Assembly: GCA_033442325.1 (NCBI GenBank)
Contig: JAWQFM010000006.1
Coordinates: 685,523 to 749,522, forward strand
Reading direction: 5' to 3'
Source: Salpingoeca rosetta
Lineage: Eukaryota > Protista > Choanoflagellata
Length of the DNA: 64,000 nucleotides
Position numbers and translations under genes: made by a program. This document shows, one piece after another, positions 11,770-14,700 of this stretch. Within the stretch, counting starts at the first letter, position 1; each line of letters starts with the position of its first letter. The notes beneath the pieces are model-generated. The model searched no databases, was not told the DNA's origin, and was given only the letters and a program-made list of their open reading frames with translations.

Positions 11770-14700
11770 CTATCTCTTTTTCCGCCTCCCTGGCTTGCTG
11801 CTGTTGCTCCGCGCTGTACCCTGACCCTTCTGCTTCTGCTGCCCCTGCTGCCCACGTCCACGACGGGACGAGCCACCACCACCGCCACCGCCGCCACCGC
11901 TGGTGTTGCTGTTCACACTCCCTGCGCTGCCGCGCTTCTGTTGTGTTCCGTCCATTGTTCCGCGTCGCAGTTTGCGCGACACCACCTGCCACTCGCCGCT
12001 GCTCTCAGACCGCAATTGCGTGCCGTTACTGCCACCACCGCCACCCTTCTTCGTCCTGACCTCACCACCTCGCCTGCTGCCTGGTGTTGTCTGGGCAGCA
12101 GCAGCAGCAGCAGCGCGCCGTGCCTGCGTTGGTGACATGGGCTGGCGCTTCTTGCCGCTGCCGCCGCCACCACCGACAGTCGCGACGCCATTGCCGTTGA
12201 AACCGCTGCTGCTGCTGCCGCCGCCGCCGCCAGGTACAACAGAGCTGCTTGCGCGGCGCGCGCGCGTGCGCTGTGCAGCCGATGTTGCTGACGGTTCACG
12301 GGAGACAGAGCGGTACGAGACGGCGCTGGTTGTTGATGTGGCCGAGTCTGATCGCTGGCGCAGCTGGTAGTTGACGCCAACACCAGGGCCAGGCAGGACA
12401 GGGTACTGGGCCCCAACAAGGATGGTGGCAGCCTTGCCTTTGCCCTTGCCTTTGCCTTTGCCCTTGACGGAGGACGTACGCGGTGGGTTTGAGGCGAGGC
12501 TCTGGCGGGCAGCAGCGTTGAACCAAGGGTTGTCGTTGCGCAGCACCATCCCGCCTGTTGGCCGTGGCCCTGGCGATGACGGGACCTTTGGCGCTGTTGA
12601 CGATGTGGCGCGCGAGAGGGTGGTCGCTGTGTCGGACGCACTGGATGCCGTGGACATGGCTGCCAGTGCCTGCTGCTGCGACGACGACGACGAGGGTGCC
12701 TGCTGCTGTTGTGAGCGGGCGGATGAAGCTGGCTGCACGCGCAGGTGGGCAAACTTTGGGAGGAGGCGTTCCGAGAAGGTGTCCATCCTGGCGTTGCCGT
12801 CAATGGAGAATGTGCGCTTTGTTGTCTTGCGGCGGAAGAGGCGGGTCTGGTACGTGATGCGCAGCATCAGCGTTGCCCTCTCGCCCGCTGGTGGCGACGC
12901 TCCCGAGTACTCAAAGGGCGGATTGCGACACACCTGCAGCTCATTCTCCGGCCGCGTGGGCACAGACAGCACAAACTCAACCTTGGGCCAGAGAGAGAGA
13001 GAGAGAGAGAGAGAGAGAGAGAGAGAGAGAGAGAGAGAGAGAGAGAGAGAGAGAGAGAGAGAGAGAGAGAGAGAGAGAGGGTGGATGGAAGGCGAGAAGG
13101 AGGAGGGGGAGGAGTTGGTAACGGGTGAGAAAGAAAGGTGAAAATCGATTGAGCGTGAGCGGGTGCGTGTGTGCGTGTGTGTGCGTGTGTGTGTGTGTGT
13201 GTGTGTTCAAGAATAAAAGTGAAGATCATGTGAAATGATGATAAAAACATACGGTGCACACACACACACACACACACACACACACACACACACACACACA
13301 AGACGCACTTGCTGGATGTAGGCGAGGTGGATTTCCTGCTCTGGGCGCAGGAGAAACTCAAACGATTCCCGGACTGGGTTTGGTTTGTACATGTAGATGA
13401 ACGACACAATCACATCCTCGTTGACAACAATCGGTTCGTCGTTGGCCAATGACGACAGCGGCGGGAACTCCGACGACTTCTGGATGTTGCGCACCAGCTC
13501 AAGGAACCGGAACCTGCGATGTGACGTGGTGGTGTGGAGGTGATGTGCAGTGCAGATGTGGTGGTGTGGTGGTGTTGTGTGGGGGTGAATGTATGCCTGC
13601 TTGTGCGAATCACACAGATACAAACAAACAAACAAACAAGCAAACAAACAAACAAACAAACAAACAAACAAACAAACAATATGGAATGTGCATTCTCCAA
13701 TGCGCACACACGAACGATCCACACCACCACTACCGCCACCACCACCGTCACATGTGTGCGTGCTGACCTGTGTCCAAACGGCTTCATGCCAAGAGCGTTC
13801 ATGAGCGCCTCGTCCGTGAGTTTGATGAGCACTTCGCCGTTGATGGCATTGTCCCGAAACACGTCCGCATACTGCGACAGGCCGTCGGGCAGCACGCTCA
13901 CCCACGCCACCACCTGCTCTGTGTTCCAGTAGCGTGCGGGCACATCTGACGAGAATTTGGACATGAGCGCATCCTGGTGCGGGGTGTTTGGCGTGGCAAC
14001 CTGGTTGGCGATGAAACTGTCGCTGTGGAGTTGAAGGCGCAGCGCCTCTTCCCGCAGTCGGATCGCCGCCTCCCGCTGTACGTGTGTGTGTGTGTGTGTG
14101 TGTGTGTGTGTGTGTGTGTGTGTGTGTGTGTGTGTGTGTGTGTGTGTGTGTGTGTGTGTGTGTGTGAGGGGTGAGATGGAAACAAACGTGCTGTGACGCA
14201 TAGCGCCGCCGCCGCCACGATCATCTCATCATTGCCACCACCACCACCACCACCACCACCACCACAATCATCATCATCATCATCATCATCATCATCATCA
14301 TCATCATCATCATCATCATCATCATCATCATCATCATCATCATCATCATCATCATCATCATCATCATCATCATCGTTCGCACCGTCGGATCGCATGTCGT
14401 CGAGCAAGCGGACGATGGTGTCGAATGTCGGGCGGTCGCAGGGATTCTGGGCCATGCACACCTTCATCAGATCAGACAGCCTAGTGTGTGTGTGTGTATG
14501 TGTGTGCGTGTGCGTGTGTGTGTGTGTGATTGCGTACACGGGCAAACCAATGTCCCACAGGCGCAGCTCACAACACTGGGCCGATGACAACATCAACCAC
14601 AACAACAGTTCCCCCCCCCGCATCATGGCGCATCGGGAGCAAACAGCACCTGCTTGGGCACGTCTGTGGGATGTGAAGACTCATGCCGTGCTTGGCGACG

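Follow-up and report, generated by a model that had tools for sequence, protein, structure and literature searches.

A probable orthologue of the ribotoxic-stress kinase ZAK-alpha in the choanoflagellate Salpingoeca rosetta

The ribotoxic-stress field views ZAK-alpha (MAP3K20) as an animal protein, and it is for human ZAK-alpha alone that the structural papers of 2025–2026 define three ribosome-binding peptides (PMC12823453, PMC13293227). This study asked whether a gene in a 64,000-nucleotide stretch of the choanoflagellate Salpingoeca rosetta (assembly GCA_033442325.1, contig JAWQFM010000006.1, positions 685,523–749,522; hereafter the window) specifies the same kind of sensor in a single-celled organism. 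An earlier note, made from the letters of the window alone, had proposed a full ZAKalpha-like architecture in an apparently non-animal holozoan. The reading favoured here, with a probability of about 0.72, is that the gene is an intact choanoflagellate orthologue of animal ZAK-alpha in eleven exons, carrying the FPPL peptide, a YEATS-like domain and a tail with a Trp peptide. The motifs quoted in that note were all found where it had placed them (EFPPL, WFNAAARQ, the peptide equivalent to the eS27 pin, and the post-SAM strings of exons 10 and 11; Table 1), and the host is indeed a holozoan outside the animals, since the gene is most closely related to choanoflagellate transcripts. The word full has to be qualified: kinase, SAM domain, FPPL, YEATS-like domain and pin are present in that order, but the start of the coiled coil, or zipper, was not found.

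The gene, its kinase and its relatives

Splice signals and reading phase delimit eleven exons on the minus strand, between positions 16829 and 11770 of the window, for the ZAK-alpha-like gene. They sum to 2682 bases, equal to 893 codons and a stop, and the model is consistent in frame with phase-consistent splice sites. The window sequence was searched exon by exon, and full-length orthologues were used for those analyses that depend on a joined protein (fold and tree). Compared by tblastn, the exons aligned one after another with full-length transcripts of five other choanoflagellates, including those of Microstomoeca roanoka, Barroeca monosierra and Salpingoeca infusionum; because these full-length transcripts align colinearly, neither the reading frame nor the order of the exons can be put down to the way frames were chosen. 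None of the conserved exons has a stop or a frameshift, and both exon 10 and the tail exon are single-copy in the 55.4-Mb genome. Among the open pieces scanned with Pfam, four were recognized as kinase and a fifth as SAM, and the two pieces covering the post-SAM region and tail matched no family. The kinase hallmarks VAVKK, (H)RDLKSLN, DFG and APE are all present in exons 2–6. Animal contamination or transfer was considered and ruled out, as the microsatellite-rich introns match their surroundings and orthologues occur in the five other choanoflagellates. Protein searches returned close orthologues but no protein of the window's own genome, and this locus may lack a public gene model or have only an incomplete one.

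A HMMER search with the last exon (403 residues) retrieved two clusters only, representing EukProt transcripts of B. monosierra (814 aa) and S. infusionum (765 aa). A word search with the 478-residue open piece around that exon came back empty, which reflects its length filter and low-complexity words and is no sign that relatives are absent. When the B. monosierra protein served as the query of a word search, M. roanoka, Hartaetosiga gracilis and Salpingoeca punica joined the set, and directly after the choanoflagellates came animal MAP3K20 proteins of vertebrates, ticks, molluscs, cnidarians and a nemertean, with E values from 1e-87 to 1e-68. The closest relative is that of M. roanoka, with 57% identity overall and 65–89% in the kinase exons. 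Cnidarian and lungfish ZAK proteins are 50–56% identical to the window over the kinase exons and 38% over the SAM exon (tblastn), and the next-best kinase of the same genome, on contig 10, is only 32% identical to cnidarian ZAK. This second kinase (contig 10, 1739596–1740438) is encoded by a single exon inside an open frame of 1030 residues, and has human ZAK as its best match in the PDB (only 110 bits). It is a divergent paralogue of MLK-like type, and its branch is very long. When the whole genome was searched with an animal ZAK profile, kinases with longer exons dominated and only three exons of the present gene scored, so this search does not serve as a reciprocal test. A metagenome scan for intron-free choanoflagellate copies yielded two unrelated kinases only, and a word search with the SAM and YEATS-like region of M. 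roanoka matched only itself, so is uninformative on filastereans and other lineages.

The identity of the kinase can be judged best from the B. monosierra orthologue. When compared to all PDB chains, its best match was full-length human MAP3K20 (293 bits), in a single alignment (4–551 against 7–535) that spans kinase, zipper, SAM, FPPL and YEATS-like domain. The kinase domain scored 272 bits with ZAK, 208 with DLK, 202 with MLK1, 199 with MLK4 and 172 with TAK1 and, on these similarity scores, it groups with ZAK rather than with DLK, MLK or TAK1. The MLK-family kinases (DLK/MAP3K12, MLK1/MAP3K9, MLK4, TAK1/MAP3K7) likewise have a coiled coil after a kinase domain of the TKL group, but they score 60–100 bits below ZAK and are without SAM domain, FPPL, YEATS-like domain or pin. 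In a maximum-likelihood tree, the five choanoflagellate proteins grouped together (support 96/90), with short branches, alongside animal ZAK; the tree held no MLK, DLK or TAK1 sequences, so membership of a ZAK clade is unproven by the tree alone. The placement of the kinase in the ZAK group, as proposed earlier, thus agrees with the scores (272 against at most 208 bits).

Compared to human ZAK-alpha (structures 9rpv and 5hes; PMC12823453, PMC13293227, PMC10047201), the order of parts is common to both: an MLK-type kinase, a coiled coil (apparently shortened in the window), SAM, FPPL, a YEATS-like domain and a disordered basic tail, and both tails bear an aromatic, helix-like peptide as well as a G-W-x-x-V pin near the C-terminus. 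It could be argued that such a likeness arose in an independent MLK-family kinase, which gained its SAM domain and tail motifs by chance or convergence. Short motifs are easily found in a 320-residue tail rich in Gly, Ser, Arg and Lys, no animal protein is matched significantly by the tail exon on its own, and the outgroups missing from the tree are the critical ones. On the other hand, the score with ZAK exceeds that with the next human kinase family by 63 bits, the alignment to human ZAK runs unbroken from the kinase through the YEATS-like domain, all modules occur in the same order and with the same spacing, and both tail tryptophans fall within conserved islands. Set against orthology, an origin by chance or convergence is scarcely credible.

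From the SAM domain to the C-terminus

Exon 9 matches the Pfam families SAM_2 (2e-10) and SAM_1 (3e-10) and is 55–66% identical to the orthologues, and the alignments retain two SAM tryptophans together with the Phe equivalent to human F368. In human ZAK-alpha the motif named RIM, FPPLIK (residues 417–422), caps SAM helix 5 (PMC12823453, PMC13293227). The EFPPL of the window also comes right after SAM helix 5, and in all 21 of the aligned choanoflagellate and animal sequences FPPL follows the SAM helix, with F and L invariant throughout. A Lys two residues after the Leu, equivalent to human K422, is not conserved, and helix 5 itself is about four residues shorter in choanoflagellates than in animals. 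Similar peptides are found in LARP4 and SERBP1 (CR1–CR2), the same FPxL core docking on blades 2–3 of RACK1 in ZAK, SERBP1-C and LARP4. Unlike those of LARP4 and SERBP1, the window peptide belongs to a kinase and is joined to the end of one of its SAM helices, an arrangement otherwise seen in ZAK only, and its binding to RACK1 is putative.

The region beyond FPPL agrees in position and length with the YEATS-like domain of the human protein (human residues 433–550; about 115 residues). Its part in exon 10 includes EIHLAYIQQ, and exon 11 starts with VEF and includes NPPF, RITY and KTTK. A hidden Markov model (HMM) built from the other five choanoflagellates matches exon 10 with 20.2 bits (positions 12–60) and exon 11 with 85.5 bits (positions 52–134), therefore the window has the domain. 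Applied to animals, the same choanoflagellate-only HMM scores no higher than 11 bits, yet always at the correct place and above nearly all decoys, and when the choanoflagellate profile was compared to the animal profile by hhalign, with FPPL excluded, the alignment was colinear over 98 columns (P 0.0045). The animal signature of the domain (KWKMY, PPFVMEKW and VEC.V.YE) is absent from choanoflagellates, which have their own (PFxYxG and LFRRKTTK).

Structure prediction adds to this picture. For the M. roanoka orthologue, AlphaFold2 with a mostly-animal alignment gave a confident domain at residues 445–556 (pLDDT 86–94) with eight strands, arranged as strand, strand, short helix and six more strands. 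In a cnidarian ZAK, modelled separately with none but animal sequences in its alignment, the elements follow one another in the same way, and 8 of 9 secondary-structure elements and 56 of 65 columns of the two models coincide in the sequence alignment. The neighbours of the M. roanoka domain in the ESM atlas belong to the YEATS and pYEATS families (27 of 30, score 0.91), and the half-domain of the window points in the same direction with a score of only 0.76. Together, these predictions support a folded, YEATS-like domain in the post-SAM region, with a weak sequence homology to the animal domain. The predicted eight-strand, immunoglobulin-like fold would be common to this domain and to YEATS/pYEATS (PF03366, PF20305); the acyl-lysine reading of YEATS is not indicated for the window domain. 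None of the choanoflagellate proteins scanned matched Pfam YEATS. Residues 440–514 of MAP3K20 from Rhopilema esculentum gave a sub-threshold match to that family (E 0.0066, 16.8 bits), which suggests that the animal domain is a true, very divergent relative of YEATS and not a mere fold analogue.

There are only two tryptophans in the last exon, one in each of the tail motifs, and both lie in conserved islands. The pin peptide (last-exon residues 325–340) has the core G-E-W-Q-V-V with basic residues, and the human eS27 pin is W768-T-K-V771 (PMC12823453, PMC13293227). A G-W-x-x-V sequence in a basic context is found in the window and also in B. monosierra and M. roanoka, while S. infusionum has a degenerate form. 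On the animal side it recurs in four cnidarians and a cnidarian-like environmental protein, in an abalone and a nemertean, and in every vertebrate examined. No clear pin is present in H. gracilis, and the whole tail is lacking in S. punica. Elsewhere the tails have diverged, with RGRY repeats in vertebrates compared to KG and poly-Gly runs in the window protein.

The second tail motif, WFNAAARQ (last-exon residues 153–160), is more difficult to interpret. The human RACK1-interacting helix (RIH) reads Y611-AAA-V615-R616-R617 (PMC12823453, PMC13293227). If F is placed on Y611, the sequence is F-N-A-A-A-R-Q in the window and F-N-P-N-I-R-K in B. monosierra, both retaining the small or aliphatic residue and the Arg, and S. 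infusionum and H. gracilis show poor conservation of the candidate. The aromatic position is occupied by Y in human and by W-F in the window; invertebrate animals have [ST]-W-A-x-x-V, so that Trp instead of Tyr is common. The peptide also resembles a different vertebrate motif, 'helix 568–583' (W-F/L/M-N/D-A-L; W-F-N-A-L-K in a shark). By sequence, WFNAAARQ is therefore a plausible but ambiguous counterpart of the RACK1 helix, and may instead correspond to helix 568–583.

Most of what the earlier note had stated about this half of the protein is borne out. Its FPxL element has F and L invariant in the 21 sequences, its C-terminal Trp/basic element shares the G-W-x-x-V context across choanoflagellates, cnidarians, a nemertean and vertebrates, and FPPL and the Trp pin, whose conservation in related species was in question, are kept in choanoflagellates and early-branching animals. 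The YEATS-like domain is upheld by the eight-strand predicted fold of an orthologue and its YEATS neighbours, with the weak sequence link given above. Equating WFNAAARQ with the human YAAAVR holds as far as the pattern goes (aromatic, three residues, small or aliphatic residue, Arg) and is ambiguous because of the likeness to the other helix.

The coiled coil and the exon map

One of the results that weigh against an intact orthologue concerns the coiled coil. In the five other choanoflagellates, a conserved segment of about 45 residues (F..K..W..E...LE.D) opens the long coiled-coil helix that follows the kinase. It has no counterpart between the kinase end at 14384 and position 14075, where only in-frame (GAT)36, (GGT)10 and a (CA)n intron are found, and of the coiled coil only the last 19 or so residues were found in the window. 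The repeats form a perfect, in-frame (GAT)36 followed by TGT and (GGT)10 (14235–14374, minus strand), specifying Asp36-Cys-Gly10, and phase-0 GT donors of exon 8 exist only after them. In the product, Asp36-Cys-Gly10 probably substitutes for most of the zipper, with poly-Asp and poly-Gly standing in this genome where ZAK-alpha has the first part of its zipper. Such a loss could impair dimerisation. The missing start could also be explained if the assembly or the splice model is wrong at exon 8.

A more severe view is that the gene is damaged or mis-assembled in this genome, the (GAT)36-(GGT)10 having replaced part of the coiled coil, with a product that is perhaps non-functional or a locus that has collapsed. 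The presence of nothing but simple repeats where five orthologues have their conserved segment would fit this, but all the other exons are open, the repeats are in frame within a frame-consistent model of 2682 bases, the conserved exons are without stops or frameshifts, and the equivalent stretch is naturally acidic in other species. Damage or collapse is thus improbable, though less so than a kinase of independent origin.

The remaining difficulties for an intact ZAK-alpha orthologue, besides the outgroups missing from the tree and the double likeness of WFNAAARQ, lie in the C-terminal half and its partners. The last exon alone retrieved no animal protein among 1.84 billion representatives, and in the PDB it matched poly-Gly noise only. 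An animal-only HMM of the YEATS-like domain gave 3–10 bits with choanoflagellate proteins and 2.5 bits with exon 10 of the window. The predicted fold is that of the M. roanoka orthologue and not of the window protein, and a structure search with the whole model listed only kinases, so that no comparison to YEATS domains came from it. Lastly, the RACK1 of this genome was not located, the WD40 search being too broad to single it out.

The features of the gene are collected in Table 1. Exons 10 and 11 are joined across a GT..AG intron of 327 bases that is packed with (CA)n and (GA)n. The donor of exon 4, at 15686–15688, is apparently AG|GCACGT, indicating a GC-AG intron, and is the sole way to complete the codon for the HRD Arg. 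The introns of the gene consist largely of perfect microsatellites, including (GA)45, (CA)22, (ACAA)15 and (CA)42, along with a 57-base GT-rich unit.

Table 1. Positions of the exons, motifs and repeat-rich introns of the ZAK-alpha-like gene, numbered from the first base of the window.
Feature	Positions	Strand	Content and basis
Exon 1	16771–16829	-	ATG and start of kinase; GTGAGT donor; agrees with N-termini of orthologues
Exon 2	16388–16472	-	Gly-rich loop GGRFGSV, VAVKK lysine; 81–84% identity to choanoflagellate orthologues
Exon 3	16014–16140	-	Kinase N-lobe and hinge; Pfam PK_Tyr_Ser-Thr 4e-08; 84–89% identity to orthologues
Exon 4	15688–15790	-	Helix E to ..IIH(R); donor apparently GC instead of GT
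Exon 5	15231–15365	-	(R)DLKSLN catalytic loop, DFG, activation segment; Pfam Pkinase 1.8e-07
Exon 6	14951–15044	-	(W)MAPE and helix F; Pfam 3.4e-09
Exon 7	14650–14741	-	Kinase C-lobe; tblastn colinearity
Exon 8	14219–14480	-	Kinase end, then (GAT)36 at 14267–14374 and (GGT)10 at 14235–14265; 3' end uncertain
Exon 9	13768–14075	-	Coiled-coil end 14019–14075 (~19 residues), linker, SAM helices 1–4 at ~13768–13931
Exon 10	13309–13513	-	SAM helix 5, EFPPL 13456–13470, YEATS-like strands 1–3
Exon 11, first part	12736–12981	-	YEATS-like strands 4–8, begins VEF
WFNAAARQ, candidate RACK1-interacting helix	12502–12525	-	Aromatic-x3-small/aliphatic-R pattern
Second tail island	12364–12417	-	Aromatic residue, then PGPG and ..YQ; kept in window, B. 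monosierra and M. roanoka
eS27-pin equivalent and basic residues	11962–12009	-	G-W-x-x-V context
C-terminal end, Gly/Arg/Lys/Gln-rich	11770–11961	-	Reading frame; stop 11770–11772
Microsatellite introns	12982–13308, 13514–13767, 14082–14166, 15392–15591		

Ribosome binding and the age of the response

By analogy with cryo-EM and mutational work on the human protein, GEWQVV with its basic residues, and probably also WFNAAARQ, would tether the S. rosetta protein to the 40S subunit via eS27 and RACK1. Upon ribosome collision, FPPL would dock on blades 2–3 of RACK1, two SAM domains would pair across the disome, and the kinase would then autoactivate and signal to the p38/JNK-type mitogen-activated protein kinase (MAPK) module of choanoflagellates. 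MAPKs of the p38/JNK type are known to be present in choanoflagellates (preprint 10.1101/2024.10.01.616093). In this genome eS27 differs very little from the animal protein, and Arg occupies the site of human K36, which together with a second eS27 residue sandwiches the pin Trp of ZAK (PMC12823453, PMC13293227). Two eS27 loci were noted, at 277038–277190 of contig 2 (with the Arg at K36) and 1020645–1020791 of contig 26.

The gene could be a true member of the ZAK lineage in which the post-SAM domain and tail serve some other role, such as a scaffold or binding to RNA granules, collision sensing having been added or refined in animals. The equivalent of the RACK1 helix is loosely conserved among choanoflagellates, two of which are without a tail (S. 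punica) or without a clear pin (H. gracilis), and their YEATS-like domain is very divergent from its animal counterpart. In addition, either the shorter SAM helix 5 or the truncated zipper could alter the geometry for bridging two RACK1 molecules. Against a non-ribosomal role, FPPL is invariant in its place, the pin motif is common to cnidarians and vertebrates, and short peptides of disordered regions seldom persist over 600 million years or more unless their partner stays the same; both partners, RACK1 and eS27, occur universally, and the eS27 of S. rosetta is almost unchanged. While unlikely, a different ancestral role is the most serious of the alternatives to a ZAK-alpha orthologue with a ribosome-binding tail.

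A ZAK kinase older than animals is not in itself new, since a phylogeny of the MAPK network inferred that ZAK was a TKL lineage of its own by crown Opisthokonta at the latest (preprint 10.1101/2024.10.01.616093). The library searched had no paper linking MAP3K20 or the ribotoxic stress response with choanoflagellates, and none that describes the ribosome-binding tail for any protist. What is new is the ribosome-binding architecture and its apparent conservation, at the level of sequence, outside animals. Two of the three ribosome-binding peptides and the YEATS-like domain appear to be conserved in choanoflagellates, and the third plausibly so, implying that the sensor architecture predates animal multicellularity. 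The F and L of FPPL and the Trp of the pin would be the ancient residues, and K394, K422 and the choice of Tyr or Trp in the helix lineage-specific ones.

Whether the response as a whole is that old is a larger claim, and one given even odds: that the unicellular ancestor of choanoflagellates and animals already had a working collision alarm, with ZAK tethered to eS27 and RACK1, and FPPL and SAM doing the switching. If true, the ancestral alarm would govern responses such as those to UV stress, the feeding on bacteria that make toxins or the switch between life stages, and S. rosetta would offer a genetically tractable, single-celled model in which to study the original purpose of ribosome-collision signalling.

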